Positions 1-48,831 of a stretch of 64,000 nucleotides of DNA are shown piece by piece. Made by a program: the position numbers and the translations under genes. The notes under the pieces were generated by a model. It had not been told where the DNA came from. It saw only the letters and a program-made list of their open reading frames with translations, and ran no database searches. Position 1 is the stretch's first letter, and every line of letters starts with the position of its first letter. The DNA lies in the IMG/VR virus record IMGVR_UViG_3300046170_000519, positions 124,001-188,000 of that record; one strand, given 5' to 3'.

Positions 1-2794
1 TGAAAGTCGGAGTAGCAGAGCAAAGATTGCTGTCACAATTAGATATTTTTTTTCCGAAACTATTGTTATGACCTGCATGTCCTGCAGCAATCCAAGGTCC
101 AGAATCAACATAACGATCTGTATCAGGTGAGCAAATTGAATCAAGCAAAGTATAGCAAAAATGATATCCGTCGTTATGATAATAAATGAAGGTATCTCCA
201 ATAGAGGAAACTAAGTCACTGTAAACACTTTGAGAGAAAGAATCTTCAGAAGGGCAAATTTTAAATGTTTCATTTAAATTAATTGAACCACCAGAACCAT
301 TATGAGCCCTAATTAAGGAATCTGCGTCACACACTTCTTTCTTAAAACAATGGCAAGAGGGTGTATTTGTGGGCGTTATTGTATGAGTCTCAGTTTGAGT
401 TTTTGTACCCGTGGGTGCAGTTTTTGTATTTGTCGGAAATGGAGTGGGGGTTGTGCAATTACCGTCCCCTTTACATTCTGGACAACAACATGGGCATCCA
501 GGACTTCTTCCACAATAATATGGCCCGCTTGCATTGAACGTAGGGTCTGAATGATAACATAAAGAACCGCATAAACCGTTACTAATTGGAGCTCCATATT
601 CATTTAAACAAGTTTCGGTATATGTAGAAGTTGGGGTTGGAGTGTGATTTGTGAAAGTAAAAGAAGGGCTAGGTGTTTCACTGGGGCTTGGTGTCTCAGT
701 GGGAGTTGCAGGACAATTTTGAATTTCAATTCCTTGACAGTCATCTGGAGAATTACGACACAAAAAGCAAGCGTCTCCCGTTTGCTTATCTAAATTATTA
801 GGATCATTAAGCCTAAATCCCAAAAGCTGAATTTGAATATCAGATAAATTTTGGTTAGTAACGAACGCTAATAATAATTGATCATACGTACAAGGCTCGA
901 AAACACCACCAGAGTACGAAGAGCAAAACATATCTTTTAAGTCAGCTAGAGAAGTTGAAGGGTTATTGACTGTAATTTGACCCGCAAGAGTTGATTGGCT
1001 ATAACTTAAAACAATTTGCTTGTAAATATTATGAGGTATAATATCTGCTAAATCATATTCGCTGTACGTGGAACCATTACAAGAACCACCTTTTTCTATT
1101 GATTTAACACAATCTCCGTCAAAACAATGCACTTCTTCGTCAAAGTTTGGAGCACAGCTATCATCTAGCCATAAAGGACCAAAAAGCCTAAAAGAGTGTT
1201 GAGCTCCACTAACCATTGTTATGGTGTGACACGTTGTGCAGTTTTGTTCTATTTCGTACGATAAATTTTGCTCCGATAAACAATCACCTTCTAAATCTGG
1301 AGGAAAAGGTATGTCGGGAACTACCGTTGGATCTTCTGGTAGTGGTGGAGCATCAGCTGGAGGTAAATCTTCTGATTTAGAATATGGTCCGACAAGAAAG
1401 GCGCATCCTGGAGACTCATCAGAAAATTGACCTTTATAGCTTCCATCTGTATAATCGCTAGAATTTGCTCCTTCTGGAAGTTTATAGTAAGTATCATACT
1501 CAAAACCATATATTTCAGGTCTTTCAATAGATCCATCACAGGCAGTAGCATCCCCACAAGAATCTAGTAAATAATAGTCAGCGTCTGTTAGTGTGTGAGT
1601 GGGGGTTGGCGTTTCAGTAGAAATAGCAGAGCCAGTTTCTGTTGGTGAAAATTTTGTATTAGTTGTTGTTGGAGTCGGATTTTCACAACTACAAGGTAAA
1701 TAACTAAAAAATAAATTTGAGGGAATATTTAATGTTGTAGTGGGGTTTCCAGCAGAACAGCATACATATGAAATACTAACACAAAGATCTCCACTCTTGT
1801 AAGTGCCTTCTGTTAAATTATTGGAATTAAAATAAATTCCTTCGTAGGCTTTATGCGATTGATCGCTAGAGCTACATACAGTATAGTATACACAGCTAGA
1901 ACATGCCGTGCATTGTTGTGAAGTTGAATTAATTCCAAATGTATTATTTTGACAAATATCAAAAGGCTTTTCACAAGGTGGGCACGTTACTGTTTCTGTA
2001 AATGTTTGAGTTGAAGGTAGTGTTTGAGACGATGTTTCGGTTCGAGGCGGTGTTTCGGTTCGAGGCGGTGTTTCGGTTCGAGGCGGTGTTTCAGTTCGAG
2101 GCGGTGTTTCAGTTCGAGGCGGTGTTTCAGTTCGAGGCGATGTTTCGGTTCGAGGCGGTGTTTGACTTTTTGGAGGATCAGTTTCAGCAGGAGTTTGAGT
2201 GGGCGGTTTAGTTTGAACTGGTGTTTCAGTTCGAGGCGATGTTTCGGTTCGAGGCGGTGTTTCGGTTTGAGGAGGTGTTTCAGTTAGAGTTTGAGCTGTA
2301 GGAGTGAGAGGAATAGTATAGCTTCCTGTAGCAGTTTTTGGAAGTGAGGAGGTAAATGTGTTAGTTGCTGAAGTATCTGTCGGTAATGGGGTCTTATTAC
2401 CACCTCCACCTCCACCTGGGCCTCCAGGATCTGTTGGCTCAGGCGGTTCAGTTACAGGTGGAGTATCTGTTCTACAGCTTTCATATTCGCAGAGAGAATT
2501 ATCAACGCAATCACAATTACCACAAAGGTTGCATGCCGATGGATCTGCACAACCAGGATTTGAGGCACAAAGACAAGGATTTGCCGCTAAAGCTTTTTGT
2601 TTAGCTTCATCTCCATAACAGCCATTATAAAGACATGTTTCATTGTCTACAACAATACTAACACTCGTACCATCACTTAAAGATACTGAACCGCTAGGGC
2701 AAGCAGGGTCATAGTTGTCCGCACAAACATCGTTACAACAATGCCCGTGCCAATCTATGGAAAATTCTAGCAGATCATCTTGTATGGGGAGCAT
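1..2794 (-). CDS. Cys-rich / Thr-Pro-rich repeat protein, 3'-truncated by the window edge (>931 aa; missing from the ORF track)
   Basis: Manually translated: ATG at 2792-2794 (MLPIQDDLLEFSIDWHGHCCNDVCADNYDPAC...). No stop was found in the lines translated down to position 1. Contains GCADPSACN-type Cys motifs, (TETPPR)n and TPT-rich linkers like the 4048-aa protein. Confidence 0.9.
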   Translation of the reverse strand, partial: MLPIQDDLLEFSIDWHGHCCNDVCADNYDPACPSGSVSLSDGTSVSIVVDNETCLYNGCYGDEAKQKALAANPCLCASNPGCADPSACNLCGNCDCVDNSLCEYESCRTDTPPVTEPPEPTDPGGPGGGGGGNKTPLPTDTSATNTFTSSLPKTATGSYTIPLTPTAQTLTETPPQTETPPRTETSPRTETPVQTKPPTQTPAETDPPKSQTPPRTETSPRTETPPRTETPPRTETPPRTETPPRTETPPRTETSSQTLPSTQTFTETVTCPPCEKPFDICQNNTFGINSTSQQCTACSSCVYYTVCSSSDQSHKAYEGIYFNSNNLTEGTYKSGDLCVSISYVCCSAGNPTTTLNIPSNLFFSYLPCSCENPTPTTTNTKFSPTETGSAISTETPTPTHTLTDADYYLLDSCGDATACDGSIERPEIYGFEYDTYYKLPEGANSSDYTDGSYKGQFSDESPGCAFLVGPYSKSEDLPPADAPPLPEDPTVVPDIPFPPDLEGDCLSEQNLSYEIEQNCTTCHTITMVSGAQHSFRLFGPLWLDDSCAPNFDEEVHCFDGDCVKSIEKGGSCNGSTYSEYDLADIIPHNIYKQIVLSYSQSTLAGQITVNNPSTSLADLKDMFCSSYSGGVFEPCTYDQLLLAFVTNQNLSDIQIQLLGFRLNDPNNLDKQTGDACFLCRNSPDDCQGIEIQNCPATPTETPSPSETPSPSFTFTNHTPTPTSTYTETCLNEYGAPISNGLCGSLCYHSDPTFNASGPYYCGRSPGCPCCCPECKGDGNCTTPTPFPTNTKTAPTGTKTQTETHTITPTNTPSCHCFKKEVCDADSLIRAHNGSGGSINLNETFKICPSEDSFSQSVYSDLVSSIGDTFIYYHNDGYHFCYTLLDSICSPDTDRYVDSGPWIAAGHAGHNNSFGKKISNCDSNLCSATPTF
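2020..2290 (-). repeat. 18-bp tandem repeat encoding (TETPPR/TETSPR)n
   Basis: ttcgaggcggtgtttcgg-type units in tandem, in frame within the 1-2794 ORF. Confidence 0.9.
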
Positions 2795-2804
2795 AAACAA
2801 TATT

Positions 2805-3651: not shown

Positions 3652-3661
3652 ATATTATATA

Positions 3662-5191: not shown

Positions 5192-6205
5192 TTAAAAATC
5201 ATCTTCTAGAGATCCTGATTGTTGATACTCCCTAACTCTTCTTTCGAAAAAATTACCCATAGCTTGAACATCAACGACTTCCCCTAGCCAAGGAAATGGA
5301 TTATGATCGCTGGGAAAACGATAATCTAAACCTATAGCTTCTAATCTTCTGTTACCTATATAATGCATATAATCAACAAACATTTCAGCATTTAGACCCA
5401 AAATTCCTGTTGGTAAAACATCATGAGCATAAGATATTTCTAGCTCGACAGCTTTTTTTATGTGATCGATAAATTCTTGCTGAATATCTTTGGTCCAAAT
5501 AGAAGGATTTTGTTCGATTAATGTATTAATTAAATATGTACCAAAAGCTATATGAGAACTTTCATCCCTTAAAGTATACTTTATCTGATCAGAAATTCCT
5601 TGGAGTTTATTTTGACGACCAAGAGCTAAAAGCATGGCAAAGCCACTAAAGAAAAAAGTTCCTTCGCAAACAATCCAATATGTTAAAAAATTTCTTAATA
5701 TTTCTTGCTTCCCTTCTTTGTTGTGAGGGTTGAAGTCTTGACGACTAATGTCGTTAGTTATGCTCATTAAGAAATCATCTTTTGCTTTAATACTTGGAAT
5801 GTTTTCATAAGCAGCAAACACTTCTTCAATATTAAGATCAAGGCTATCACATATATATACTACCGTAAGATTGTGAAGACTTTCTTCAAAAGCTTGACGC
5901 AAAATGTACTGACGACACTCAGCATCAGTAATAAATCTAAAAGCCGAAAGAAGAAGGTTATTACCAACCAAAGACTCTGATCCAGCAAAAAACCCCAAAC
6001 AGCGTTTAACGAGCAATTTTTCATCATCTGTAATTTCATTATTTTTCCATTGTTTTATGTCGTTCTGCATGCTAATTTCAGTAGGCATCCAGTTATTAGC
6101 ACAACTTTTTAAAAATAAATCCCAAGCATATTTATGTTTGTGGGGTAAAATTCTATTAACTCCTGCTATATTTTTTGTTAAAAGTTCTCCTGTTTTATTA
6201 TCCAT
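5192..6205 (-). CDS. nrdB: ribonucleotide reductase beta subunit (R2), class Ic-like
   Basis: NNWMPTEI, FFAGSES, QAFEESLH, CEGTFFFSGF, RDESSH, NFFERRVREYQ; Glu as first ligand and Val at the radical-Tyr position. Confidence 0.96.
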   Translation of the reverse strand: MDNKTGELLTKNIAGVNRILPHKHKYAWDLFLKSCANNWMPTEISMQNDIKQWKNNEITDDEKLLVKRCLGFFAGSESLVGNNLLLSAFRFITDAECRQYILRQAFEESLHNLTVVYICDSLDLNIEEVFAAYENIPSIKAKDDFLMSITNDISRQDFNPHNKEGKQEILRNFLTYWIVCEGTFFFSGFAMLLALGRQNKLQGISDQIKYTLRDESSHIAFGTYLINTLIEQNPSIWTKDIQQEFIDHIKKAVELEISYAHDVLPTGILGLNAEMFVDYMHYIGNRRLEAIGLDYRFPSDHNPFPWLGEVVDVQAMGNFFERRVREYQQSGSLEDDF

Positions 6206-6262: not shown

Positions 6263-9200
6263 TTATTTATATGTTTTTCCACATATATCTATAAATCCAT
6301 TTTTTGAATATTCTTCATGCTCTGGAGTTCCATATAATATATTTAATTCTCCATTCCATACTGTTAAATCTAAAGAATTGAAAACATTTCCAATTTTATT
6401 TGCAAGTCCATGACTATAAACTCCATCATTAAAGCCAGCAAAATGCAAACCACAACCTTTTAAGGAGTCGCCGTCTTTTTTCATTAATAGTGAGCCTGAG
6501 TCACCAGAATCTGAAAAATAAATATTTTCCCCCTTGCCTCTATAGTATAAACAATCAGTGAAAATAGCTTTATGTTGCATAGATGGAACAACTTTAATGG
6601 AGCCCGTAGAGGGATCTAGAATTCTATCACTACAATAGTAAACATAACCCATCCAAGAGTCAGAAATTATTGAAGGATGTTCAGTAAAAGAGTTTTCAGT
6701 GGTAGAGCCCGTCGTCCTACCGCTTTTAAACACAAAATCTCCAACTTTTGCATCTGAGAATGATGGGGTATTATTAGTTAAATCAATAATCGAACTAGAG
6801 GGGAAAACACTTGCGCCAAAATTTATTGATGCAGCATCTACTGTATTAATTGGTTGAAAGCCATGGTTTCCATAGGAAGTTTTATTAAAAGGATGTGGAA
6901 AAAACAAAGGTTCGATATAATTTGTAGATCCAATATTTACCGATCCTGCTCCAAGGACAGTGTTTTGATCTAGAAAAGACGGACTAGAGATTTCTAAATC
7001 TAAAAGATTTTTATGAAAATCAGAAAGAGTGCCAGAATGATATTCAGAGTCTCCATTACCTCGTTCATCCGTAGAGCAACAAAAAGGGACTCCAAAAAAT
7101 AAAACATTTAAAGGTTGATTACTTGGCTTGGAACTCCAAGAAGTGTAATATATTTTTTTAAAAGTTTCATCAGAGGTTTGATAAGAAAATTCCATATACT
7201 CATCAGACATTAATATTGGATAAAAGCGAAAACTATTATTTTTAGATTTGCCATTTTTATATATGAGTGTGCCGTCATTTTTAAAAATAGAAACATTCGT
7301 CTCGACCTTGGAATATATAGAAGTTAAATTGCTTAAATCACTGTAAGTTAAACAAAAAGGTGAAGAATCTAGATTTAAACCCTTAAAAATATACTTCCTA
7401 CCAGCTTCAATAAAAGCAAAATCAGAATTGTCAAAAGCTGGATTTTTAAAAGAATCTCCAGAAATATCTTCAAAAATAAACCCGTTTTCATAAGATACAT
7501 TATAAGATATAGGAGGTTCTGTTTTTGGATCATAAACTTGAGAGCCGATAACATGGTTGTTAGTAACACAAACAAGCTCTTGGTCTTTATTGAGAGCGGA
7601 AAAACCTAAAGTTCCTGCAGAATAATCATTCGCCACCCCAATTGATACTCCTCCAGGAATGCACTTGTAGGGTTTTTTGTCAGAGTCGTAGGAATTTTGA
7701 GGGCAGCCATGAATTGATTTTTTTGAGGGAGATAGGCCATTAACTTTTTCGCCGCATGCGCCAAAAGCAAACATCTTAGGGACTTCTACGACATCTGTTT
7801 TAAAACCCTCTATCGAAGAGGGTATCAAATCTTCCTTCTTCAGTAAACTTTTTCCAACTTTTTTTGAAACCCCTACAGCAATACATTCTTGATGAGAATC
7901 TACACCATCTATAATTTTTGTAGAGACAAAAACACTTTCTACATTATTTTTTTGTAAAAGAAATTGAGTTGACGAAAAATTCATAGCTTGAGAGATATTT
8001 TTAAAATTATTTGAAGAGTTGAAATCGGAACTTGATGAAGATTCTAAAAGAAAAGAATTGCAGGATTCACAATCAATAAAGCCATCATAATAAGAAAGAT
8101 CGAAAGAATCTTGACATAGCTGGGCATAAGTTAAACGTTTGAGTCCACCCATGTAGCCATGGTTAAAACAATTATAGCTAACTGTATCAATGTCACCTTT
8201 TACATTTAAAGTAATATTTCCATAAAAATGTTCAATATTTAACCCGTCCACAACTTTGGTTCCCGCACTGTTTGAGCCAGTGACTTCAAGCACACTCGAA
8301 TCAGCCACAAATCCTAGAGCATGGATTTGGGGGACATTTTCAATTATATAAGTGCCTAAACCAATTCCAATAAATGAATGATTGTCATAATCAACTCCAT
8401 TAAATATAATTCGACTTGAACCATCAATACTAAAAGTATTGTTACCTTTCGATGATGGAATCAAGCATTGGACATATTGACCAGTAGATCTAAAACATTT
8501 ATCATTGTAGATAATAGAATCAGAAGATTCTGGTATCACAATTTTCTCTAAAGTTTTTCCTGTCGGTCTGGGAGGGCAGAGAGAACAATCATCAAAATTT
8601 TCGAAATCGCAATTTTCACCAGAAGATGTTGGAGTAATTGATAGAGTTGGGGGGATGCAATGATTGCAATTAATCGTATCGTCAAGAGAAGTTTGTGAAG
8701 GAGTTATAGGGATAATTAAACCAAAACTAGGAGTTATAGTTGGGAGAGGTAAAAAGTAAGGGCTTTTTGTTTTTGTATGAGTGAATGATCCTGTTTCAGT
8801 TTGCGTATAGGTTGCTGATTGAGTTTTAGTGAATGAACCTGTTTCGGTTATAGTATAAGAACCTGTTTCGGTTTGAGTTTCGGTCTCAGTCTGAGTCTGA
8901 GTCTCTGTTTGAGTCTGAGTACCAGTTTCTGTTTGGGTCTGAGTACCAGTTTCTGTTTGGGTCTGAGTACCAGTTTCTGTTTGAGTCTCCGTAGGTGTCG
9001 GATTCTCTATTATCGTTGCTGTAGGGGGCTGTGTGTTAGTTAAACTCGGAACTGGCTGTGTGTTAGTTGAACTCGGAACTGTTTGAGTGGGAGGAAGTTC
9101 TACCCTGTCAGTAAATGGAGCAGTCTCCGTAGGTGTCCCACGAAGAGGATTCTCTGTCTTTGTTCCTGTCTCAGTTCGAACTGTTAATGTCGGAGTATTC

Positions 9201-12200
9201 GTCTGAGTCTCTGTCTCAGTCTCCGTCTCCGTCTCGGTCTCAGTCTCGGTCCCCGTCTTTGTCGCACTAAAAGTATTTGTTTGAGAATTTGTTTGCGTTG
9301 GAGTATAAGCTGTATTCGAAGGGGTTGCATCAGGCGTTTCTGTTGGGCATAAACCATCTGGACAAGTCTCATGCCCACAACACAAGCCATCAACGGAAGA
9401 GCAACGATAATCACAAAAACCAGCACAATCTCCTAAGTCACAAAGAGATGTACTTGATCTAGATTCTCCCTGAGGAAGATTATAGTAACAAGTCCAAAAA
9501 TCCCCTGGATTATCATGCCATTTATATGGACCTTCGCTGCATGGATTAGTATCATTTCTCTCGTAGACACTTTGAGCATTGCATGGATCTTCCCCATTAG
9601 CTCGCCTTGGCAGTTGACTGTTGTCAAGACCTTGGTAATCCATGTAATAACAACCTTGAGGTGGACCTGAGCATGTATAATCCCCTTCTGGGTCAGAATC
9701 ATTTGGGCAAGTTAGACACTTGGTACGCATGCTTCCATAAGAGACATCACAAGGATCATCACAACATTGACTTCTAAAGCATTGATCTAAATGATAAAGA
9801 GTACATTTTCTACAACGATCTCTGTAATAACACTCAGTAATTTTTAATGTAACACCTGATCTGTTGGTATATTCTTCTAAAAGATCTGGAAAATCAGGAT
9901 CAATAACTTCTCCGTAATTACAAGCTCTACCAAAAGGTAATCCACCGTCTTCATTTGGAATTCCATTAGGAGCTGTATCCCAGCATCTTTTTGGGGTTTT
10001 TGTAGGAGTATCAGGAATTGTTTTTGTTTTTGTTTCTGTAAATGGACCTGTGATTGTCCCTGTAGTTGTCTGGCTATCTGTATCTGTATCAGTTTCTGTA
10101 TCAGTTTCTGTATCAGTTCCTGTGTTAGTTTTTGATGGGGTTTTAGTTTTTGTTGGGGTTTTTGGTTTTGTAGAAGTTCCTGAGTAAGTAAATGAATATG
10201 TTTCAGTATTTGTGGCAGTAGCAGTTTCAGAAAAAGTAGGAGTTGAGCTATCAGAAGCAGTATCACTTTCTGGAGCTGTTGCAGTTTCTGGAACACTATC
10301 ACTCGGTGGACTGTCAGTTGCACATTCGACTCCACAACAACTCTCTTCACAATCATAATGTAATTGTGGATGAGTTGAGCCTTTAGGCAATTCAGCACCA
10401 CATGGAATTTCAGGAGGCAAATTGAAGCATGAATCCCCTAATTTAGTACACCATTTTTCATTGTATATACAAGTATCTTTTGAGCATTCACAACCCGCTT
10501 CTTCTACAGTCGCATCTCTACACTCAGCAAGAAATAAACATTCAGGCTTGTAGTTAGAAGCGCAAGGGTCATTACAGCATTTAGTGGGTGATGCTGTGAT
10601 TGTGGGTGTTGATGTATGTGAACCCGTCTCTGTGATCGTATTAGAAAATGTATAAGTTTCCGAAGTTGTGATCGTATTAGAAAATGTATAAGTTTCCGAA
10701 GTCGTATCTGTATAGGTTTCTGTACCTGTTTCTGTGTACGTTACTGTTCCTGAGTAACTAGGTGTTGGGGTCGCTTCACAGTCATCACAATCACTATATG
10801 TATTTGATTCTTGTATCGCAGCTAATAATCCATCGGGTGGCGAATCTACTGGAGCACTACCACAAGTTAATGCATCGTTGTAGCTAACATATATACAGCA
10901 ATCTCCAAGTTTATAAACTCCCGTTTGAAGTATAGAAGGAAGGCAAAAATTAGAGCTTTCAATTATATAAGGATTGTCACAGCCGTAGTAACAAGGATAA
11001 AAATCATGAACATAACCAGTACTTGTTTCTGTGGGAGTAGATGTATGTGAGGCTGTGCTTGAGTAAGTTTTTGTATATGAAGCTGTATATGTTTGCGAAG
11101 ATGAACTCGTATGCGATGAAGTATAAGTATCAGTTGCCGAACCTGTTTCAGTAAAGGTAGATGTTGGGCATTTTGCATCATTTTCACATTTTTCACAACA
11201 ACATTCACAAGAATACGTGCCACAATTGTCAGCATCTGAATAAAGAGGTAAATTACTTCCAGGAGTATAAAGATAACAGCCCGAACAATTACATGTTTCA
11301 GTGTAGCTGGTAGTGATTGTAGCAGTTCTTGTTAAGGTGTTTGTTTGGGTCTGTGTCTGAGTTTGTGTCTGAGTCTGTGTCTTAGTTGGTGTCTGAGTTT
11401 TTGTCTTAGTTTGTGTTTTTGTACTAGTCTGGGTTTTGGTTTTAGTTGCTGTTTTTGACGGTGTTTCTGTTGGCGGTAAAGATGGAGTTCTGGTGGGGCA
11501 TACGCAATCACCATTATTTAAACCAGCTCCATTTGTTGCTCCAGAGTTATTAGTAGCACAATTTTGTTGATCTACACAAACCCAGTCCAGACATGTTGAT
11601 CCATCAGGAGCTAAACCTCCACCTTCTCTAGTGTAATCATCATTGTTGGATTTTATTTTATATCCAAGACTTTCTCCTGTGCAGCGATCAAAGAATTCAA
11701 GACATCCTGTCTCACATGGACAGCAATGATCGCAATGATGATTGTTGTTATCGCAATCTGTTTGAGTGCATTCCTGTAATGTAGCCGCAGAGCGACAGAA
11801 AGTATTTGTGTAGGTAGGAGTGAAACTTTGAGTTTTAGTAAATGAGCCTGTTTCTGTTTTGGTGTTTGTAAAGGATCCTGTTTCTGTTGTAGTCTGAGTC
11901 TGAGTTTCGGTTTGTGTTTTTGTGCGTGTTTGTGTGTCTGTTTCAGTAAAGGTAGATGTTGGGCATTTTGCATCATTTTCACATTTTTCACAACAACATT
12001 CACAAGAATACGTGCCACAATTGTCAGCATCTGAATAAAGAGGTAAATTACTTCCAGGAGTATAAAGATAACAGCCCGAACAATTACATGTTTCAGTGTA
12101 GCTGGTAGTGATTGTAGCAGTTTGTGTTAAGGTGTTTGTGCTTGTTAAAGTTTCGGTTCTCGTTTGTGTGAAAGATCCTGTTTCTGTTTGAGTAAAAGAA

Positions 12201-40755: not shown

Positions 40756-41703
40756 CTAGCCTTTGACTTTGAATGTTGCAGTGTATCCAAGATTACCCGC
40801 TCCAAACTTAGGTGATTGAGATAAATATAAAGTAGCTCCCTCTACTAAAGTTAAAGGAGAGGTGAAATCAGATTTTGAGTTTTTTTCATCTAATGGGTGT
40901 GTCCATGATTTTTCTGATTTTGTTCCATCTGCAGCTGATTGATTTAATGTTATTGTTGATTCTGTATTAGAACCTCCTGTTGTAAATATAGAAGCTGTAA
41001 CACTTAAAACTTTTTTGTTATGCCAGGAGGAGGGGACAACTATGATTGCATCTTCAAAATTAAAATTATCAATAAGTTCAGAAGCTGGAACATTATTTAT
41101 TGCAAAATACTCTTCTTCATTGGGGTATTTTTTCCAATTAGCTTCATCACGAGTCCAGACTCCGCCGTTTCCGTTTGATTCACCTTCTACTTTATGATTA
41201 ATCCAAGCATTTATTAAAGCTTGTGAAGGAGCATTATCCCCAGAAACTTGAGCATTGTACTGAGTAACAGAGATATCTCCAACAGCTGCATTATATAAAG
41301 TTTCATAATCATCAATCATAAATTGATAAGACTGGTTTTTCTCTATTACATAGACTACCATGCCTAATTTTAAACGACCAGAACTCATTAAATCTCTGTT
41401 TAGCTCTAATAAAGCAGGAGTAGTTATTATTTCAACACAGGGAGGGACCTCATTCCTGTTACAGCTTCTTGGAACTTCTTCTGTTCCACCAGGTGTATAT
41501 ATTAATGGTATAAAATTAAGAGGATCATCAAGTGGAATGCCTGTGACTCCATTAGTAGTACTATAAGTAATATTGTTTAAATGATAATATTCTTGTAAAC
41601 CACCAATGAGAGATGTCCCAGAAGTTACTCCAGTTTGAGAACTCATGGAAAAAGAATCTGCAACTTGTTTTGCTGTTAAATGTATGTGATCTGAAAAACT
41701 CAT
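40756..41703 (-). CDS. hypothetical structural protein with tail-fibre-type RLKLGMVVYVIE motif
   Basis: 315 aa; LMSSGRLKLGMVVYVIEKNQSYQF resembles a motif recurrent in phage tail-fibre N-termini; operon with the stalk genes. Confidence 0.6.
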   Translation of the reverse strand: MSFSDHIHLTAKQVADSFSMSSQTGVTSGTSLIGGLQEYYHLNNITYSTTNGVTGIPLDDPLNFIPLIYTPGGTEEVPRSCNRNEVPPCVEIITTPALLELNRDLMSSGRLKLGMVVYVIEKNQSYQFMIDDYETLYNAAVGDISVTQYNAQVSGDNAPSQALINAWINHKVEGESNGNGGVWTRDEANWKKYPNEEEYFAINNVPASELIDNFNFEDAIIVVPSSWHNKKVLSVTASIFTTGGSNTESTITLNQSAADGTKSEKSWTHPLDEKNSKSDFTSPLTLVEGATLYLSQSPKFGAGNLGYTATFKVKG

Positions 41704-41712: not shown

Positions 41713-43239
41713 TTATTTTGAAACAGCTCTCCATTTTACTCTATCGTTGCCACTATTATCAAAAGCAAAAGAGTTAGTCGATCTGTTGCCGTAAGTAGAA
41801 TAAACTTTATAAATCGTTCCATTAAAACTTACGTTATGAGAAGAAAGCACTGAGTCTGGTGATAATGTTGTGTCAACACCATTGATCGTTTTGATTATAT
41901 CAAAATTTGGAGATACATGATCAATAGGCAACCAGAAGCTGTAAATATATTTATTACCAGTTCCTTGAAAACAACCAGCGTTATTTCCGTAAGTGTTTTC
42001 TGGGATTGTAATTTCATTAAACAAACCGTCACCACTGAATTGATCAACGGGTATTTCTTGGAAGAAGCAAGATCCATAGACACTTGTACACTGTCCTGCA
42101 TAAGTTTCTCCACTGTAGCAAGTATTTTGGTTGTCAACAACACTTGTTATGTAATCAGCTAATTCAGAAGGTGAGTCTACACCATTAATTATAGTAAAAG
42201 ATTTTGCTGGTGAGACACTATTCGCGTTAAATAATTCCGCCCAGTCAAATGTAGAATAATCTGTTCCGCTAGCAAGAGGTTGCTCTGCTACTTTGTGAGG
42301 TTCAGCTATTAAGTAGCCAACAGCACTAGGATTAGTGCCGCCAGCTTCTGTTGGAGTGTTTGTTTCTGTCATAGTTTCTGTATTAGTTTGAGTCTGAGTT
42401 TCAGTCTGAGTTTGAGTTTCAGTCTGAGTTTGAGTTTCGGTTTCAGTTTGGGTAAATGAACCTGTTTCGGTCTGAGTTTGAGTTTCGGTCTGAGTTTGAG
42501 TTTCGGTCTGAGTTTGAGTTTCGGTTTCAGTTTGAGTTTCTGTTTCAGTTTGGGTAAATGAACCTGTTTCAGTCTGGGTCTGAGTTTCGGTCTGAGTTTG
42601 AGTTTCGGTCTGAGTTTGAGTTTCGGTTTCAGTTTGAGTCTCTGTTTCAGTTTGGGTAAATGAACCTGTTTCAGTCTGAGTCTGAGTTTCAGTATAAGTT
42701 TGAGTTTCTGTTTGGGTCTGAGTTTCTGTTTCAGTTTGGGTAAATGAGCCTGTTTCAGTCTGAGTTTGAGTTTCTGTATAAGTTTGAGTTTCTGTTTCAG
42801 TCTGAGTTTCTGTTTCAGTCTGAGTTTCTGTTTCAGTCTGAGTAAATGAACCTGTTTCAGTCTGAGTAAACGAACCTGTTTCAGTCTGAGTAAATGTAGA
42901 TGTATCTGTTTCCGTGAATGTAGGAGTTATTCCACAATGAGAAATTCTTTGATCAGAGGAGGTTGAGTAAGGGCTAACAAAAGCATGATTAATAGTTATT
43001 GATTTACCTTGTTGTAATTCAATATAATAAACTTTTCCGCATTCTAATTCTGAAAAAGATTGAGATGAACTAGCTGCAGCAATCCAAGATTTTGCAGACC
43101 CAGAATCATCAATTTGCCAAACCGTATTTATTTCAGATTTATGAGAATTAAGAGGAAAATTAGTACAACTAGATAGGCTTTGAGTTCCTGGACAGAAACC
43201 ATACCATATGAAGTTATATTTTTTATTTAAGAGGGCCAT
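41713..43239 (-). CDS. 508-aa Thr-X stalk protein with WYGxCP...LECGK N-terminal domain
   Basis: N-terminal domain, ~180-aa TETQ/TGSF stalk, distinct C-terminal domain; intact frame. Confidence 0.88.
   Translation of the reverse strand: MALLNKKYNFIWYGFCPGTQSLSSCTNFPLNSHKSEINTVWQIDDSGSAKSWIAAASSSQSFSELECGKVYYIELQQGKSITINHAFVSPYSTSSDQRISHCGITPTFTETDTSTFTQTETGSFTQTETGSFTQTETETQTETETQTETETQTYTETQTQTETGSFTQTETETQTQTETQTYTETQTQTETGSFTQTETETQTETETQTQTETQTQTETQTQTETGSFTQTETETQTETETQTQTETQTQTETQTQTETGSFTQTETETQTQTETQTQTETQTQTNTETMTETNTPTEAGGTNPSAVGYLIAEPHKVAEQPLASGTDYSTFDWAELFNANSVSPAKSFTIINGVDSPSELADYITSVVDNQNTCYSGETYAGQCTSVYGSCFFQEIPVDQFSGDGLFNEITIPENTYGNNAGCFQGTGNKYIYSFWLPIDHVSPNFDIIKTINGVDTTLSPDSVLSSHNVSFNGTIYKVYSTYGNRSTNSFAFDNSGNDRVKWRAVSK
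42365..42915 (-). repeat. Thr-X coding repeat (TETGSFTQ / TETQ)
   Basis: Low-complexity in-frame repeat. Confidence 0.9.
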
Positions 43240-43325: not shown

Positions 43326-46160
43326 TTATAAAGTTAAAATACATTTCCCCTCAGATATATCACACTGATAACATTTATCATTATATGAAAGAATGATATT
43401 ATTGCTAGCAAATTCTCCAACAGATGTTGCCCCCATAATAAAACTCATTGAGCTATTATCTGATAGCCATATATCGATAGTAAAAGGAAGGCTGGTTGTT
43501 GATTTAGATATGTTTGGTAAACATACGCTTGAGTTTCCAACTAAACCTACATGAACTCCAGATAAAGTAATAACCTCTGAAGAAACTGGATCTATAATTT
43601 CTTGTATATTTGAGGAAATATCCACAGAATTTTGGCAGCAAGAAGTTGATGTATTGGTTGGGGTGCTTGGAAAAACAATAATATGAGTTAAAGTTCTTGT
43701 TTCAGTCTGAGTTTGGGTCTCTGTTTGAGTTTCAGTCTGAGTTTGTGTTTCTGTCTCCGTCTCTGTTTCAGTCTGAGTTTCAGTTTCTGTTTCGGTAAAT
43801 GTATTTGTCTGAGTTTGAGTCTCTGTTTCAGTTTGAGTCTCTGTCTCTGTTTGAGTCTGAGTACTAGTTTCTGTCTCTGTTTCGGTCTGAGTCTGGGTCT
43901 CTGTTTGAGTTTCAGTCTGAGTTTGTGTTTCTGTCTCTGTCTCTGTTTGAGTCTGAGTACCAGTTTCTGTCTCTGTCTCTGTTTGAGTCTGAGTACCAGT
44001 TTCTGTCTCTGTCTCTGTTTCAGTCTGAGTCTGGGTCTCTGTTTGAGTTTCAGTCTGAGTTTGTGTTTCTGTCTCTGTCTCTGTTTCAGTCTGAGTTTCA
44101 GTTTCTGTTTCGGTAAATGTATTTGTCTGAGTTTGAGTCTCTGTTTCAGTTTGAGTTTCTGTCTCTGTTTCAGTCTGAGTACCAGTTTCTGTCTCTGTCT
44201 CTGTTTCAGTCTGAGTCTGGGTCTCTGTTTGAGTTTCAGTCTGAGTTTGTGTTTCTGTCTCTGTCTCTGTTTCAGTCTGAGTTTCAGTTTCTGTTTCGGT
44301 AAATGTATTTGTCTGAGTTTGAGTTTCTGTCTCTGTTTCAGTCTGAGTACCAGTTTCTGTCTCTGTCTCTGTTTCAGTCTGAGTTTGTGTTTCTGTCTCT
44401 GTCTCTGTTTCAGTCTGAGTTTCAGTTTCTGTTTCAGTTTGGGTTTCTGTCTCTGTTTCAGTCTGAGTACCAGTTTGAGTCTCTGTTTCAGTTTGAGTCT
44501 GAGTCTGGGTCTCTGTTTGAGTTTCAGTCTGAGTTTCAGTTTCTGTTTCGGTAAATGTATTTGTCTGAGTTTGAGTCTCTGTTTCAGTTTGAGTCTCTGT
44601 TTCAGTTTGAGTCTCTGTTTCAGTTTGAGTTTCTGTCTCTGTTTGAGTCTGAGTACCAGTTTCTGTCTCTGTCTCTGTTTCAGTCTGAGTCTGGGTCTCT
44701 GTTTGAGTTTCAGTCTGAGTTTGTGTTTCTGTCTCTGTCTCTGTTTCAGTCTGAGTTTCAGTTTCTGTTTCGGTAAATGTATTTGTCTGAGTTTGAGTCT
44801 CTGTTTCAGTTTGAGTTTCTGTCTCTGTTTCAGTCTGAGTACCAGTTTCTGTCTCTGTCTCTGTTTCAGTCTGAGTTTGTGTTTCTGTCTCTGTCTCTGT
44901 TTCAGTCTGAGTTTCAGTTTCTGTTTCAGTTTGGGTTTCTGTCTCTGTTTCAGTCTGAGTACCAGTTTCTGTTTCTGTCTCTGTTTCAGTCTGAGTCTGG
45001 GTCTGTGTTTGAGTTTCAGTCTGAGTTTCAGTTTCTGTTTCGGTAAATGTATTTGTCTGAGTTTGAGTCTCTGTTTCAGTTTGAGTCTCTGTTTCAGTTT
45101 GAGTCTCTGTTTCAGTTTGAGTTTCTGTCTCTGTTTGAGTCTGAGTACCAGTTTCTGTCTCTGTCTCTGTTTCAGTCTGAGTCTGGGTCTCTGTTTGAGT
45201 TTCAGTCTGAGTTTGTGTTTCTGTCTCTGTCTCTGTTTCAGTCTGAGTTTCAGTTTCTGTTTCGGTAAATGTATTTGTCTGAGTTTGAGTCTCTGTTTCA
45301 GTTTGAGTTTCTGTCTCTGTTTCAGTCTGAGTACCAGTTTCTGTCTCTGTCTCTGTTTCAGTCTGAGTTTGTGTTTCTGTCTCTGTCTCTGTTTCAGTCT
45401 GAGTTTCAGTTTCTGTTTCAGTTTGGGTTTCTGTCTCTGTTTCAGTCTGAGTACCAGTTTCTGTTTCTGTCTCTGTTTCAGTCTGAGTCTGGGTCTCTGT
45501 TTGAGTTTCAGTCTGAGTTTCAGTTTCTGTTTCGGTAAATGTATTTGTCTGAGTTTGAGTCTCTGTTTCAGTCTGAGTACCAGTTTCTGTCTCTGTCTCT
45601 GTTTCAGTCTGAGTCTGGGTCTCTGTTTGAGTCTGAGTCTGGGTCTCTGTTTGGGTCTGAGTACCAGTTTCTGTTTGAGTCTCCGTCTCTGTTTCAGTGA
45701 ATGTATTTGTCTGGGTTTGAGTCTCTGTTTCTGTTTCTGTTTCTGTTTCAGAAATTGTTGGAGATACTGTCGGGGTTCCATCAGCACAACAACCTAAAGA
45801 TAGTCTATATATATCTGTAGAACTTGAATGAGAAAATTGAAATTCAGGAATATCAACAAATCCTTGCCCTGGTTTTAGAATAATTTTATAAGCTTTTCCG
45901 CACTCTAAGGATTTTATTCCAAGGAATGGAATTTGACTTTTAGTAGCTGAACTCGAATAAGAAGACTCTGAAACTAAATCTTCAAAAGGATGTATAGCAT
46001 AATAAATTTCTGGATGATTGTGATCGTTGTTATTAGAATCTCCCGCATCAATAGTTACTAAATCAAAAGGGATACATTTCGCAGCACTTTCTTCAGGACA
46101 AGTCCCATACCACCCATAGTAAATTAGGTAATTGGATTGATTTTGATCTAAGCGAGCCAT
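43326..46160 (-). CDS. 944-aa Thr-X stalk protein, paralog of the 508-aa protein N-terminus
   Basis: WYGTCP...LECGKAYKIIL N-terminal domain, ~690-aa TETQ/TGT/TNTF stalk, ~105-aa CC-initiated C-terminal domain. Confidence 0.9.
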   Translation of the reverse strand: MARLDQNQSNYLIYYGWYGTCPEESAAKCIPFDLVTIDAGDSNNNDHNHPEIYYAIHPFEDLVSESSYSSSATKSQIPFLGIKSLECGKAYKIILKPGQGFVDIPEFQFSHSSSTDIYRLSLGCCADGTPTVSPTISETETETETETQTQTNTFTETETETQTETGTQTQTETQTQTQTETQTQTETETETETGTQTETETQTQTNTFTETETETQTETQTETQTQTETETETETGTQTETETETQTETETETQTETETETETQTQTETETETETGTQTETETETQTETETQTQTNTFTETETETQTETETETETQTQTETQTETQTQTETETETETGTQTQTETETQTETETQTETETQTETETQTQTNTFTETETETQTETQTQTQTQTETETETETGTQTETETETQTETETETQTETETETETQTQTETETETETGTQTETETETQTETETQTQTNTFTETETETQTETETETETQTQTETQTETQTQTETETETETGTQTQTETETQTETETQTETETQTETETQTQTNTFTETETETQTETQTETQTQTQTETETQTGTQTETETETQTETETETQTETETETETQTQTETETETETGTQTETETETQTQTNTFTETETETQTETETETETQTQTETQTETQTQTETETETETGTQTETETETQTETETQTQTNTFTETETETQTETETETETQTQTETQTETQTQTETETETETGTQTQTETETETGTQTQTETETETQTQTETQTETQTQTETETETSTQTQTETETQTETETQTQTNTFTETETETQTETETETETQTQTETQTETQTQTETRTLTHIIVFPSTPTNTSTSCCQNSVDISSNIQEIIDPVSSEVITLSGVHVGLVGNSSVCLPNISKSTTSLPFTIDIWLSDNSSMSFIMGATSVGEFASNNIILSYNDKCYQCDISEGKCILTL
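43697..45750 (-). repeat. Thr-X coding repeat with 492-bp higher-order unit
   Basis: cggtaaatgtatttg marker at 44117, 44303, 44555, 44777, 45047, 45269, 45539 (spacing 186, 252, 222, 270, 222, 270). Confidence 0.9.
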
Positions 46161-46161
46161 G

Positions 46162-48831
46162 TTAACTTATTGTTATAGAATAAACACCTCCGTTAAGATT
46201 TACGGTTTGACCCTCTAGCATCTTTACCATGTCTTCTACACTGGTGAATTCTGGGTAATATGTATCTTTAGGTTGGAATGGGGAGTAATATGATTTGAGC
46301 ATCATACCTTCAACATACAAATGGTTTTCTACCGAAATAACCGTTTCTGCTTGTACGAATCTAGGGCCTGAAGAAAAGAAAGAATTCCATTGTCCAGGAT
46401 CGCTAGTCCATTCTAGTATAAAAGTCGAATCTGGTACAAGATAACGTACATATAAACCACCAGCATCTTCTTCAACAGTAAGACCTGATAGTTTTGTTAC
46501 CATGTCTTCTACACTAGCGAATTCTGAATAATATGTATCTTTAGGTTGGAATGGGGAATAATATGATTTGAGCATCATACCTTCAACATACAAATGGTTT
46601 TCTACCGAAATAACCGTTCCTGCTTGTACGAATCTAGGGCCTGAGGAAAAGAAAGAATTCCATTGTCCAGGATCGCTAGTCCATTCTAAATAAAACTTTT
46701 TCAATCTAGGAGCTGGCGTTTCAGTTTCTGTTTGAGTAAATGTTTCGGTAGTTGTTGGTGTTGGGATGATGCTGTTTACATTAACTAATATAATTGTGCT
46801 CTGATTAGGGCCTGTAAGCTCTCCTATCCAGCATTCTCCTCCATAAGTATATTTTATTGAACCATTAGAAACACCAAATGAAAGAGTTACATATCCTGTA
46901 AAGGTTGGATTTTGAACAGAGTCTTGAATGAAATAAGATCTATTCGTTGTATCTGATACATCTAAATGGTAAAAGCAAAGAGTGCCTCCATTATCAAAAC
47001 CATTTACATTAAAACCTGTATCCGCCGAAAATTGTGATCCCGTAGTTCTTGCTTGAATATCCCCAAACCCATCACAGCAATTAGGCTCAGAAGTTTGTGT
47101 TTCTGTTTCAGTCCCTGTTTGGGTTAAAGTAAATGAGCCTGTCTCTGTTTGTGTTTCTGTATCAGTCTGAGTTTGCGTTTCTGTCTCAGTTTGGGTTTGT
47201 GTTTCTGTTTCGGTCTGAGTCTGAGTATGAGTTTCTGTTTCAGTCTGAGTCTGAGTGCCAGTTTCTGTTTCAGTCTCTGTATCAGTCTGAGTTTGCGTTT
47301 CTGTCTCAGTTTGGGTTTGTGTTTCTGTTTCGGTCTGAGTGTGAGTATGAGTTTTTGTTTCAGTCTGAGTCTGAGTGCCAGTTTCTGTTTCAGTCTCTGT
47401 AGTCGTCTGAGTTTCTGTCTCTGTCTCAGTCTGGGTTTGCGTTTCTGTCTCAGTTTGAGTTTGCGTTTCTGTTTCTGTCTCAGTTTGAGTTTGTGTTTCT
47501 GTCTCGGTCTGAGTCTGAGTTTGTGTTTCAGTCTGAGTCTGAGTTTCTGTTTCTGTTTGGGTAAATGTATTTGTCTGAGTTTGAGTATCTGTTTGGGTCT
47601 GAGTGCCAGTTTCTGTTTCAGTCTCTGTAGTCGTCTGAGTTTCTGTCCCTGTCTCAGTCTGAGTTTGCGTTTCTGTCTCAGTTTGGGTTTGTGTTTCTGT
47701 TTCAGTCTGAGTCTGAGTTTGTGTTTCTGTATCTGTATGGGTCTGAGTTTCTGTCTCGGTCTGAGTCTGAGTCTCTGTTTGAGTCTGAGTACCAGTTTCT
47801 GTTTCAGTAAATGTGTTTGTCTGAGTTTCTGTCTCGGTTTGAGTTTGCGTTTCTGTTTCTGTCTCGGTTTGAGTTTGCGTTTCTGTTTCAGTCTGAGTCT
47901 GAGTTTGTGTTTCTGTTTCAGTCTGAGTCTGAGTTTCTGTTTCTGTTTGGGTAAATGTATTTGTCTGAGTTTGAGTATCTGTTTGGGTCTGAGTGCCAGT
48001 TTCTGTCTCTGTTTCTGTTTCGGTCTGAGTCTGAGTTTCTGTATCTGTTTCCGTAAATGTATTTGTCTGAGTTTGAGTTTCTGTCTCTGTTTGGGTTTGG
48101 GTTTCGGTTTGGGTAAAAGAACCTGTTTCAGTTTTTGTTTCTGTTCTTGTATTAGTAAATGTATTAGTATAAGTTTGGCTGTTTGTCGCAGTTTCGGTTT
48201 GGGTATCTGTATTTGTTTTAGTATGAGTTTGAGTCTCTGTTTCTGTATTAGTATCAGTTATTGTTGAAGTTTGAGTTGTTGTGTAAGACCCTGTTTCGGT
48301 TTGAGTTGGTGTTTCAGTTTCTGTTCTGGTTTGAGTTTGCGTGAATGAACCTGTTTCGGTTTGAGTCTCTGTAAATGAACCTGTTTCGGTTTCAGTTTCT
48401 GTATTTGAGGGAGTTTCCGTCGGGTTTGTTTCTGTTATAGTTGGTGATTTAGGTATTGAGTCTATTAGGAAATCAGGTTTATATATAGGATTATGGCAAT
48501 GAGAAACAGTAAAATCACAACTAGAACTATTTACTTGAATTTTTAAAAAATTAAAATTAAAAATTTGTTGATAATTTAATGTGTCTGAAGATTTTGAAGA
48601 AACCTCAAGGCTATAAATCTTTACCCAAGATTTTAAATTGATATCATTTGATACATATATCGATATATCACTAGGAGAATCAGATTTATTATTTAAAAAA
48701 AGTGTAAAAGAATGAGTTAAATGCTTAGATATATCATAGTTTATAGACTCCGAAGAGCCTGAATCAGTAGGAAGCAATGAACCCGAAAATTCATAGCTAA
48801 CTGATAGTGTTTTATTTAACTCAGACCTCAT
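46162..48831 (-). CDS. 889-aa Thr-X stalk protein with beta-rich N-domain, CC domain and duplicated C-terminal domain
   Basis: Intact ORF; stalk at ~47095-48420; two 91-aa C-terminal repeats. Confidence 0.9.
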   Translation of the reverse strand: MRSELNKTLSVSYEFSGSLLPTDSGSSESINYDISKHLTHSFTLFLNNKSDSPSDISIYVSNDINLKSWVKIYSLEVSSKSSDTLNYQQIFNFNFLKIQVNSSSCDFTVSHCHNPIYKPDFLIDSIPKSPTITETNPTETPSNTETETETGSFTETQTETGSFTQTQTRTETETPTQTETGSYTTTQTSTITDTNTETETQTHTKTNTDTQTETATNSQTYTNTFTNTRTETKTETGSFTQTETQTQTETETQTQTNTFTETDTETQTQTETETETETGTQTQTDTQTQTNTFTQTETETQTQTETETQTQTQTETETQTQTETETETQTQTETETQTNTFTETETGTQTQTETQTQTETETQTHTDTETQTQTQTETETQTQTETETQTQTETGTETQTTTETETETGTQTQTDTQTQTNTFTQTETETQTQTETQTQTQTETETQTQTETETETQTQTETETQTQTETETETQTTTETETETGTQTQTETKTHTHTQTETETQTQTETETQTQTDTETETETGTQTQTETETHTQTQTETETQTQTETETQTQTDTETQTETGSFTLTQTGTETETQTSEPNCCDGFGDIQARTTGSQFSADTGFNVNGFDNGGTLCFYHLDVSDTTNRSYFIQDSVQNPTFTGYVTLSFGVSNGSIKYTYGGECWIGELTGPNQSTIILVNVNSIIPTPTTTETFTQTETETPAPRLKKFYLEWTSDPGQWNSFFSSGPRFVQAGTVISVENHLYVEGMMLKSYYSPFQPKDTYYSEFASVEDMVTKLSGLTVEEDAGGLYVRYLVPDSTFILEWTSDPGQWNSFFSSGPRFVQAETVISVENHLYVEGMMLKSYYSPFQPKDTYYPEFTSVEDMVKMLEGQTVNLNGGVYSITIS
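46226..46688 (-). repeat. direct repeat, ~190 bp, offset 273 bp (LEWTSDPGQW...VEDMV twice)
   Basis: 46228-46415 versus 46501-46688 differ at 7 positions, all transitions. Confidence 0.92.
47095..48420 (-). repeat. Thr-X coding repeat
   Basis: Low-complexity in-frame repeat including a 120-bp duplication at 47161/47281. Confidence 0.9.

Follow-up and report, generated by a model that had tools for sequence, protein, structure and literature searches.

Threonine-periodic stalk proteins of an uncultured marine jumbo phage: candidate long fibres, possibly glycosylated

The window analysed here is a 64-kb stretch of DNA, positions ~124,001-188,000 of IMGVR_UViG_3300046170_000519 (205,857 bp; JGI contig 3300046170 Ga0494229_00544, by exact-protein look-ups), from an uncultured marine tailed jumbo phage. 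Its minus strand, which carries every large gene of the window according to a survey of open reading frames (ORFs), encodes a group of very large proteins in which threonine alternates with another residue (Thr-X). Their sequences suggest that they are probably surface proteins with low-complexity stalks, possibly glycosylated, which would form long and flexible fibres. The more precise proposal that these proteins are flexible tethers or fibres borne by the virion is held tentatively, at a little short of an even chance. Three genes display the same plan, i.e., an N-terminal domain (N-domain), a (Thr-Glu/Gln)n stalk and a tip (lengths in amino acids, aa):

Positions 46162..48831, minus strand: 889-aa stalk protein; N-domain at residues 1-134, Thr-X stalk at 164-581 (window 47089-48342), C-terminal region with a duplicated domain of ~95 aa
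Positions 43326..46160, minus strand: 944-aa stalk protein; N-domain at residues 1-124, stalk at 139-826 (window 43683-45746), tip of ~130 aa
Positions 41713..43239, minus strand: 508-aa stalk protein; N-domain at residues 1-105, stalk at 133-298 (window 42346-42843), tip of ~205 aa

The group also includes a giant gene and two genes encoding cysteine-rich mosaics:

Positions 20079..40744, minus strand: giant Thr-X gene, with its ATG at 40744 and its stop at 20079; N-terminus of 15 residues, (T-E/Q)n array, Cys-rich C-terminal region of ~470 aa
Positions 6263..18409, minus strand: 4,048-aa mosaic protein; LysM, (HTDTA)n array, Cys-rich modules with short Thr-X/Pro linkers, C-terminal protease
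Positions 2..2803, minus strand: Cys-rich mosaic protein with T/P-rich linkers, 934 N-terminal codons of which lie in the window (2,980 aa in the full contig)

Except for the giant gene, these ORFs were found where a first-pass annotation of the window had placed them, the last one being open from 2803 to the window edge. When Thr-X runs are defined as five or more successive (T-x) units, they account for 48%, 73% and 35% of the residues of the 889-, 944- and 508-aa proteins, respectively, X being mostly E or Q in the stalks of the window. The occurrence of Thr at every second residue emphasized by that annotation is thus overwhelming in these three proteins, but the same runs make up only 10% and 6% of the 4,048- and 2,980-aa proteins. 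The shared plan of domain, stalk and tip that it attributed to the whole group is likewise found in the three shorter proteins, but not in the giant protein, which lacks a globular head (~15 residues precede its stalk), nor in the 4,048- and 2,980-aa mosaics.

At the DNA level, the stalks and linkers consist of hierarchical tandem repeats, for example a 492-nucleotide (nt) unit showing 93% identity in the 944-aa gene, or one HTDTA/HTDTV array of the 4,048-aa gene with 28.5 copies of a 15-nt unit with 99% identity. Because the tandem repeats are hierarchical and their units nearly identical, they point to a recent expansion of the stalk repeats. Stalk length is polymorphic, since the orthologue of the 944-aa protein in another sample has only 672 aa. 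In four orthologues of the 508-aa protein (P0001-P0004), the N-domain shares 49-51% identity and the tip 29-49%, with different linkers and extra globular domains inserted between the two. The orthologues of the 889-aa N-domain are encoded directly after an Fcl-like gene (see below) in L117, L124 and L148. As a separate observation, the C-terminal region of the 889-aa protein (window 46165-46980) consists of two tandem copies of a ~95-residue domain, with a sub-threshold match to the Pfam family Polyketide_cyc (5e-4).

The 4,048-aa protein has no single stalk. It contains 274 Cys and forms a string of Cys-rich modules separated by many short linkers, one module being shared with the 2,980-aa protein (38% identity, 5e-7). 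Its residues 6-45 (window 18275-18394) correspond to a LysM domain (Pfam PF01476, 1.6e-5, 25.2 bits vs a cut-off of 20.9). About 60 copies of HTDTA or HTDTV are found in it (window 17430-17857 and ~14993-15418). The D-T-A and D-T-V of these repeats fit the O-glycosylation sequon of Bacteroidota, D-(S/T)-(A/I/L/V/M/T), which is no more than a lead, the protein being devoid of signal peptide.

The C-terminus of this protein (~residues 3500-4048, window 6266-7912) is confirmed by sequence alignment as a NAL1-like serine protease of trypsin fold (PA clan) with an intact triad. Its stand-alone homologues (556-694 aa) share 33-49% identity with it, and distant homologues carry PF25608, PF25819 and PF13365. 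The His, Asp and Ser (GDSGS) are invariant and in this order in an alignment of 16 sequences that includes Trypsin_2 and NAL1-type proteins. The LysM and protease domains announced by the first-pass annotation were therefore both retained. However, the phage type differs from known NAL1-like proteases by an insertion of ~190 residues between His and Asp and by its fusion to a string of ~3,500 residues made up of LysM, Cys-rich modules and linkers. In the relatives L062 and L063, the protease has a gene of its own (613-692 aa), directly upstream of nrdB (L062:10001-11842; L063:2285-4363), whereas in the phage studied here it is fused to the mosaic protein. Used as a single sequence, the protease piece matched neither PDB sequences nor, by tblastn, any of 50,697 phage records.

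The giant gene raises a question of its own, that of its integrity. Tandem Repeats Finder describes it as a single array at 21481-40507 (~19 kb, period of 24 nt, ~756 copies). The ~6,890-aa gene of the first-pass annotation does not exist as one ORF in the window assembly: the frame changes at least four times (near 35133, near 34145, by several indels at 30110-30210, and at 25484) due to small indels within the repeat, and the 319-aa ORF at 20079-21038 is the C-terminal end of the giant gene. The extreme arrays could be partly artefact or decay, the 19-kb array being mis-assembled or the giant gene being a pseudogene filled with selfish slippage repeats. Besides the frame changes, this explanation draws on the position of both testable breaks, exactly where independent assemblies cease to agree with the window, on the insertions of 398 and 84 nt by which assemblies differ beyond 34145, and on the fact that the arrays are the end point of most short-read contigs. 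However, two independent assemblies remain in open frame. L016, from a sibling sample, is identical to the window over the first 5,611 nt of the gene, up to 35133; it then carries 4 nt that are missing from the window, and its frame is open over 4,897 codons from the start to the contig end. L169 (207,177 bp), from a third sample, is identical from the stop backwards over 5,405 nt, exactly to 25484, and is open over 2,306 codons to the stop. Furthermore, many samples contain the smaller stalk genes in intact and identical form, and unique sequence is found on both sides of the array in one contig. Artefact or decay is therefore considered improbable. Intact copies of the giant gene exist, at least for its first and last parts, and since assemblies diverge at the frame breaks of the window, the simplest explanation of these breaks is consensus or assembly errors or minor variants. 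Two of the ORFs in the public gene calls of L168, the window's own contig, are spurious (1,263 and 1,568 aa, opposite to the array at 21-34 kb of the window); they arise because of the frame breaks and because the repeat is open in all frames.

The giant gene is flanked by two ORFs that have no family match and no tblastn match in the 50,697 phage records:

Positions 40756..41703, minus strand: 315-aa ORF without repeats, ending 11 nt before the giant gene
Positions 18413..20053, minus strand: 546-aa ORF with 16 Cys, next after the giant gene

The contig belongs to a tailed phage (Caudoviricetes), since a terminase, a tape measure and a tail block are present on collinear contigs. At least 24 contigs from other samples carry the same genes, often with 100% identity. 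The large terminase (L179:27-1883, 618 aa) matches phrog_2 (1.1e-23) and four other terminase PHROGs, and the tape measure (3,497 aa, L026:9416-19909), located just past window position 64000, matches PF10145 (1.5e-27, 97 bits vs a cut-off of 33) and, by tblastn, annotated tape measures of Lactococcus 949-group phages (2e-16, 26% identity). The terminase check proposed in the first-pass annotation thus bears out the phage origin. In the direction of transcription, the collinear contigs display upstream of the window genes the terminase, a 689-aa protein with only a weak portal match (phrog_16240, 0.0039), ~15 ORFs, the tape measure and then the tail genes, including large genes of 1067, 546 and 815/837 aa. 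Relatives of the ~15 ORFs were undetectable; no capsid match was obtained among the ORFs between terminase and tape measure, and tblastn of two head-region ORFs against the 50,697 phage records was blank. Tape measures follow a rule of ~1.5 Å of tail per residue. By this rule, the 3,497-aa protein would correspond to a tail of about half a micrometre, unless much of it serves otherwise.

Giant viruses encode GT2 enzymes that resemble in fold the 258-aa protein described below and also make nucleotide sugars, and the 64-kb window contains no tRNA gene; both points would suit a contig of cellular origin or derived from a giant eukaryotic virus. Such an origin is nevertheless extremely improbable, given the canonical order of terminase, weak portal match, tape measure and tail block on the collinear contigs, the presence of a T4-type deoxynucleoside monophosphate (dNMP) kinase and of a single-stranded DNA-binding protein (SSB), the dense and co-directional gene packing, and the fact that cellular housekeeping genes were not found.

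The clade appears to be common in marine metagenomes: the nrdB of a relative (L063) belongs to a 90%-identity cluster of 448 members, some of which come from Tara Oceans samples. Concerning the host, the protease profile, run against species-representative genomes, retrieved distant cellular proteases only, and a cluster look-up gave no reliable host. Aquatic jumbo phages named "Moraphage", with predicted Flavobacteriia hosts, several core glycosyltransferases and no reported tape measure, have been described (PMC12619734). That they form the same lineage as the phage studied here was considered and could not be established.

The stalk and mosaic genes, except for the 2,980-aa one, lie between the genes of the two subunits of ribonucleotide reductase:

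Positions 52753..55206, minus strand: nrdA, class I ribonucleotide reductase large subunit, 817 aa; Pfam Ribonuc_red_lgC 2.8e-173, with ATP-cone and lgN domains
Positions 5192..6205, minus strand: nrdB, ribonucleotide reductase small subunit; Pfam 9.1e-76; far border of the island

The product of nrdA shares ~47% identity with those of annotated phage nrdA genes. For comparison, 80 IMG/VR loci were fetched by nrdA (72-84% identity; L088-L167), and the window genes and all Thr-X runs were mapped onto them. Because nrdA and nrdB are 46.5 kb apart in the window vs ~2.5-11 kb in 54 of these 80 relatives, the stalk genes look like an accessory island of ~46 kb, seemingly inserted into a block of nucleotide and sugar metabolism between nrdA and nrdB.

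The partner of Thr varies with the lineage: the window uses E/Q, L124 A/E/V/I/P, L014 Q/P, L015 D/L/V/E and L062 P. In the more distant jumbo relatives among these (L014, L015 and L062), Thr-X linkers of 5-75 dipeptides occur in several large proteins. Since Thr is kept across lineages while X varies, the Thr periodicity is, judging from these loci, a linker style of the whole clade, of which the phage studied here is the extreme case.

The mechanism that we propose starts from such linkers, which would have grown by tandem duplication in this lineage into stalks of ~80 to several thousand dipeptides and would space beta-rich heads and tips, Cys-rich modules, the LysM domain and the trypsin-fold protease. 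The conserved N-terminal part would anchor each protein on the particle, and the Thr-Glu/Gln stalk, acidic, hydrated and largely disordered, would keep the tips, binding or enzymatic, at a distance. The capture radius would thereby be larger, and the host surface would meet both a module that binds peptidoglycan and a protease. Before assembly, the Thr stalks would be O-glycosylated in the cytoplasm by the GT-A enzyme of the phage with phage-made nucleotide sugars, which is the weakest step of the proposal.

Location on the virion is suggested first by the presence of extracellular-type domains (LysM, protease, Cys-rich modules) in proteins without export signals. As claimed in the first-pass annotation, none of the stalk and mosaic proteins has a signal-peptide-like N-terminus (maximal 12-aa hydropathy ≤1.35 vs 2.5 in a membrane-protein control), and the LPxTG motif is absent from all of them. 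It is also suggested by the conservation of the N-terminal part relative to the tips, with domains inserted between them, by the length polymorphism between samples, and by the co-directional packing of these genes downstream of structural genes, the stretch 40.6-57.6 kb being free of terminator-like sites. In line with a spacer role, prediction points to a disordered stalk and not to a beta-helix or a coiled coil: in the AlphaFold2 model of the whole 508-aa protein, built with four homologues, its predicted local distance difference test score (pLDDT) is ~25-30. An ice-binding or beta-solenoid interpretation of the TxT pattern was considered and dropped, both a regular turn-forming period and a confident structure being lacking.

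Several results weigh against virion-borne tethers. Structure prediction of non-repeat domains, a check proposed in the first-pass annotation, failed for the 508-aa protein: the mean pLDDT of the model is 40.6, only the N-domain resembles a moderately confident all-beta unit, and a fold search gave no BFVD match at E 0.001 or better. LysM was the sole match when the non-repeat heads, tips, Cys-rich modules and the 315- and 546-aa ORFs were compared with Pfam, PHROGs and NCBIfam, and the domains of the stalk proteins matched no virion, fibre, tail-spike or decoration family, whether in Pfam, PHROGs, PDB and BFVD or among 50,697 phage genomes. The heads and tips likewise gave no match to a known family, to a solved structure or to a sequenced phage. 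In L148:16151-16600 (IMGVR_UViG_3300046532_004322), the 889-type N-domain is found as a stand-alone 149-aa ORF devoid of stalk. Finally, the island sits among nucleotide-metabolism genes, outside the tail module, and this assembly leaves the real length of the giant array in doubt. As a separate matter, the stalk "family" of the first-pass annotation holds loosely only: the 508- and 944-aa proteins have in common an N-domain of ~100 residues (29% identity, E 3e-7), but the similarity of the 889-aa N-domain to this type is marginal (E 0.014), and the remaining proteins share linker style alone.

Some of these points would fit proteins that are not part of the virion, i.e., late proteins, released by lysis or intracellular, that might, for instance, bind or digest wall debris through LysM and protease, which would spare progeny from being trapped on dead cells, or form a matrix around the lysed cell. 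The location of the island outside both head and tail modules and the lack of similarity to known structural proteins would then be expected. The free-standing protease of ~600 aa encoded beside nrdB in relatives would also suit such a role, and ordered assembly is difficult to imagine with a disordered stalk several thousand residues long. However, conserved N-domains associated with variable tips and length polymorphism are the usual mark of attached host-interaction fibres, and the fusion of LysM and protease to ~3,500 residues of spacer modules would make little sense for a free enzyme. A non-virion role is thus rather unlikely, and virion-borne tethers or fibres remain our preferred interpretation. 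It should be noted that this alternative and the others discussed here are partly compatible with the preferred interpretation and not all mutually exclusive.

The possible glycosylation of the stalks involves the genes located directly upstream of them, on the same strand and with small gaps:

Positions 56126..57040, minus strand: nucleotide-sugar epimerase/dehydratase of the short-chain dehydrogenase/reductase (SDR) type, 304 aa, GalE/LegB/TviC-like; Pfam Epimerase 8.9e-57
Positions 55288..56148, minus strand: nucleotide-sugar dehydrogenase-like protein, 286 aa, TTG start; N-terminal and central domains of Pfam UDPG_MGDP_dh only
Positions 50811..51587, minus strand: GT-A fold glycosyltransferase (GT), 258 aa, from profiles, AlphaFold2 and Foldseek
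Positions 49832..50764, minus strand: SDR epimerase/dehydratase, 310 aa; Pfam Epimerase 3.6e-32, no NCBIfam equivalog reached
Positions 48907..49839, minus strand: Fcl-like NDP-4-keto-6-deoxyhexose epimerase/reductase, 310 aa; its gene overlaps the upstream SDR gene by 8 nt

The sugar cassette that the first-pass annotation delimited at 48907-57040 is partly recovered: a GT-A enzyme, an Fcl-like protein and two SDRs are encoded there, upstream of the stalk genes and on the same strand, but the largest gene is nrdA and the dehydrogenase lacks the C-terminal UDP-binding domain (NCBIfam NDP-sugDHase, 178.8 vs 189.8 bits, profile positions 72-298 of 413). The nrdA gene splits the sugar genes into two groups, the 304-aa SDR and the dehydrogenase upstream, the GT, the 310-aa SDR and the Fcl-like gene downstream. 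For the 304-aa SDR, the best NCBIfam match is galE, with 154 bits, under the equivalog cut-off; a homologue with 58-61% identity adjoins nrdA in many relatives. Orthologues of the 310-aa SDR share 85-90% identity in L098, L117, L124 and L148. The last gene is designated only as Fcl-like because its match to the NCBIfam GDP-L-fucose synthase (1.2e-65, 222 bits) falls short of the 500-bit equivalog cut-off. No GDP-mannose dehydratase gene was found in the window, and the relative L148 has one (342 bits). The pairing of an SDR with an Fcl-like enzyme resembles viral 6-deoxyhexose pathways.

The 258-aa ORF is confidently predicted to encode a GT-A glycosyltransferase. A profile search retrieved 870 homologues, and among 60 aligned ones PF00535 (GT2) was matched by 28, PF10111 by 24 and PF02709 by 16. 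Its profile matches the K4CP chondroitin synthase among PDB sequences (2e-13); as a single sequence, it gave no match in the same search. The AlphaFold2 model reaches a pLDDT of 89.6 and a predicted template-modelling score of 0.89. Foldseek against PDB retrieves K4CP (5e-9), TarP, TarS, RmlT and WrtF, with a probability of 1.0 for K4CP, TarP and TarS, and Foldseek against BFVD retrieves GT2 proteins of giant viruses and marine phages. D50 is invariant, as is D109 of the IDQD motif, whose D107 is almost invariant.

Cytoplasmic O-glycosylation of the stalks by this enzyme is plausible, by analogy with serine-rich repeat proteins (SRRPs) and with virus-encoded glycosylation (see below) and on the basis of gene order and Thr conservation. 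Another explanation would be that the sugar genes are unrelated to the stalks and form a conserved auxiliary block devoted to glycans of the host envelope or possibly to phage DNA, beside which the stalk island happened to insert, the stalks being bare spacers. Among the 80 relatives, homologues of the 304-aa SDR commonly flank nrdA or nrdB (39 loci), as do those of the Fcl-like gene (36), the dehydrogenase (21) and the GT (16). Usually, such loci contain no Thr-X run within 10 kb, and only 4 of the 16 loci bearing the GT have one, two of them being the same phage and the two others one close lineage. Homologues of the four sugar genes (Fcl-like, 304-aa SDR, dehydrogenase and GT) are found beside nrdA in 11 of the 80 relatives, mostly also beside nrdB, and none of these 11 has a Thr-X run within 10 kb (e.g., L092, L096, L097, L101, L106 and L107). 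Because relatives keep the same sugar genes at nrdA/nrdB without any stalk gene within 10 kb, their adjacency is weak evidence for a dedicated glycosylation of the stalks. Furthermore, the sugar block is interleaved with nrdA and the genes of the dNMP kinase, the SSB and a dUTPase, and ordinary secreted bacterial proteins without a dedicated glycosyltransferase frequently carry (Thr-X)n and (Pro-Thr)n linkers. The acceptor of the GT would not be readable from its predicted fold, the closest structures, including the prophage enzyme TarP, acting on polysaccharides or teichoic acid.

On the other side, in three lineages the GT, SDR, Fcl-like and 889-type genes adjoin one another, on one strand and in conserved order. 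The full order GT, SDR, Fcl-like gene, 889-type gene is kept in the close lineage L117/L124, and the order SDR, Fcl-like gene, 889-type gene in two lineages besides the window (L117/L124 and L148). The stand-alone 149-aa ORF of L148 itself sits inside a sugar cluster, whose genes are of the GT, GDP-mannose dehydratase, SDR, Fcl-like, HAD and nucleotidyltransferase types. The comparison with related genomes proposed in the first-pass annotation thus recovers the order of SDR, Fcl-like and 889-type genes, but also the 11 relatives where the sugar genes occur without nearby Thr-X. GT genes are also found near Thr-X proteins in the distant relatives L063, L014 and L015, in the last two within ~10 kb. 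When IMG/VR was scanned with profiles of the GT and of the 889-type N-domain, the same three lineages only were retrieved, which is too few for association statistics. Moreover, it is Thr itself, and not composition at large, that is kept across divergent linkers, suggesting selection on the hydroxyl residue, and no base-modifying enzyme of the hydroxymethylase type was seen in the window. Altogether, the comparative data fit a general auxiliary role of the sugar genes equally well as stalk glycosylation; an auxiliary block with bare stalks is a serious possibility, which we place somewhat below an even chance.

ORFs of 228 and 119 aa are located between nrdA and the GT gene. The former has homologues with 34-42% identity in L110, L117, L124 and L146 and no match in Pfam, NCBIfam, PHROGs or PDB:

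Positions 51946..52632, minus strand: 228-aa ORF

In relatives, members of its family are fused to one or two extra domains (L110:14740-17622, L124:12458-14254 and L146:17191-19224). Motifs of these fusions ("FHIPK.aG" and "RDP..R..S.Y"), which resemble PAPS-binding loops, had suggested a sulfotransferase, an idea that Pfam and a PDB profile search did not support. Further upstream, a 418-aa protein (window 59103-60359) displays hydrophobic N- and C-terminal segments and a long Lys/Glu-rich, coiled-coil-like middle, with a sub-threshold Tetraspanin match (1e-06; 29.0 bits vs a cut-off of 32.1) and 42-48% identity in close relatives. A 202-aa ORF (window 58046-58654) with a weak match to the phrog_36 transcriptional regulator (1.4e-4) adjoins the dNMP kinase and SSB genes on the plus strand.

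Several known systems resemble the stalk proteins. The bacterial SRRPs are glycosylated in the cytoplasm, before export, by GTs encoded beside the gene of their substrate (PMC5578698, PMC6973325, PMC7661464). Like the phage proteins, the SRRPs GspB, Fap1, PsrP and those of Lactobacillus are very long and possess a binding region and a hydroxyl residue at alternate positions of the stalk. They provide the best functional analogy for the proposed glycosylated stalks, an analogy and not a membership. Indeed, the phage proteins carry Thr instead of Ser, are encoded by a phage, lie near an enzyme of GT-A fold, and lack both the special signal peptide and the LPxTG anchor. Pfam scans of the window ORFs at 48.9-64 kb retrieved neither secA2/secY2 nor gtfA/gtfB.

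Secreted bacterial enzymes carry Pro-Thr boxes and Thr-rich linkers of tens of residues, and the staphylococcal Clf/Sdr proteins Ser-Asp (SD) stalks of hundreds; all these proteins are Sec-exported. These dipeptide repeats are, as in the phage, spacers between globular modules, but in the phage the stalk of one intact gene has 688 residues and that of the giant gene thousands, without any Sec-type signal. A protein search drew many bacterial secreted proteins (SH3, NlpC/P60, cellulase, carbohydrate-binding module, type IX secretion-tagged) through Thr-X linkers alone.

Some viruses use their own nucleotide-sugar enzymes and GTs to decorate proteins of their particles, for example the Mimivirus fibrils or the chlorovirus capsid (PMC9614988). 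The phage studied here likewise carries genes for nucleotide-sugar enzymes and a GT, but none of its proteins was found to be homologous to the fibril or capsid substrates known from those viruses. The C-termini of capsid and tail-tube proteins of mycobacteriophages are glycosylated (Freeman et al. 2023 as cited in PMC12619734); as far as this citation goes, the acceptor is a short C-terminal extension of these subunits and not a separate giant protein.

Finally, phage tail fibres, whiskers and decoration proteins share with the stalk proteins a conserved N-terminal part, exchangeable distal tips with enzymatic or binding functions and length variation between strains. They differ from them by the absence of any sequence or fold match and of a recognisable trimerisation motif in the stalk proteins, and by the predicted disorder of the stalk. 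By analogy, the stalk proteins thus appear to resemble SRRP fibrils, SD stalks and Pro-Thr linkers, but they depart from them in residue type, export signals, anchors and partner genes. They are not rated as a categorically new kind of protein. Literature searches retrieved no earlier account of phage proteins based on Thr-X dipeptide repeats of such length.

The most far-reaching version of the proposal would be a mucin-like coat in a widespread clade of marine jumbo phages, in which proteins of up to ~5,000-7,000 residues, consisting almost entirely of Thr-X dipeptides and O-glycosylated in the host cytoplasm by phage GTs with phage-made 6-deoxyhexose and uronate-derived sugars, would be mounted on the virion as micrometre-scale threads bearing LysM, protease and other tips. 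This version is considered unlikely; if true, it would provide a viral analogue of both the bacterial serine-rich-repeat fibrils and the Mimivirus fibrils.

Arrays of this type break assemblies and mislead gene callers, so that genes of this kind are probably under-reported. If the stalk proteins are virion fibres, they would be among the largest known phage proteins and would represent an unusual way to extend the reach of a particle in dilute sea water. They would also illustrate the use by a phage of a stalk design known from glycosylated bacterial adhesins, i.e., a hydroxyl residue at alternate positions. In an abundant group of uncultured phages, such fibres could affect adsorption kinetics, the stickiness of the particles and host range.

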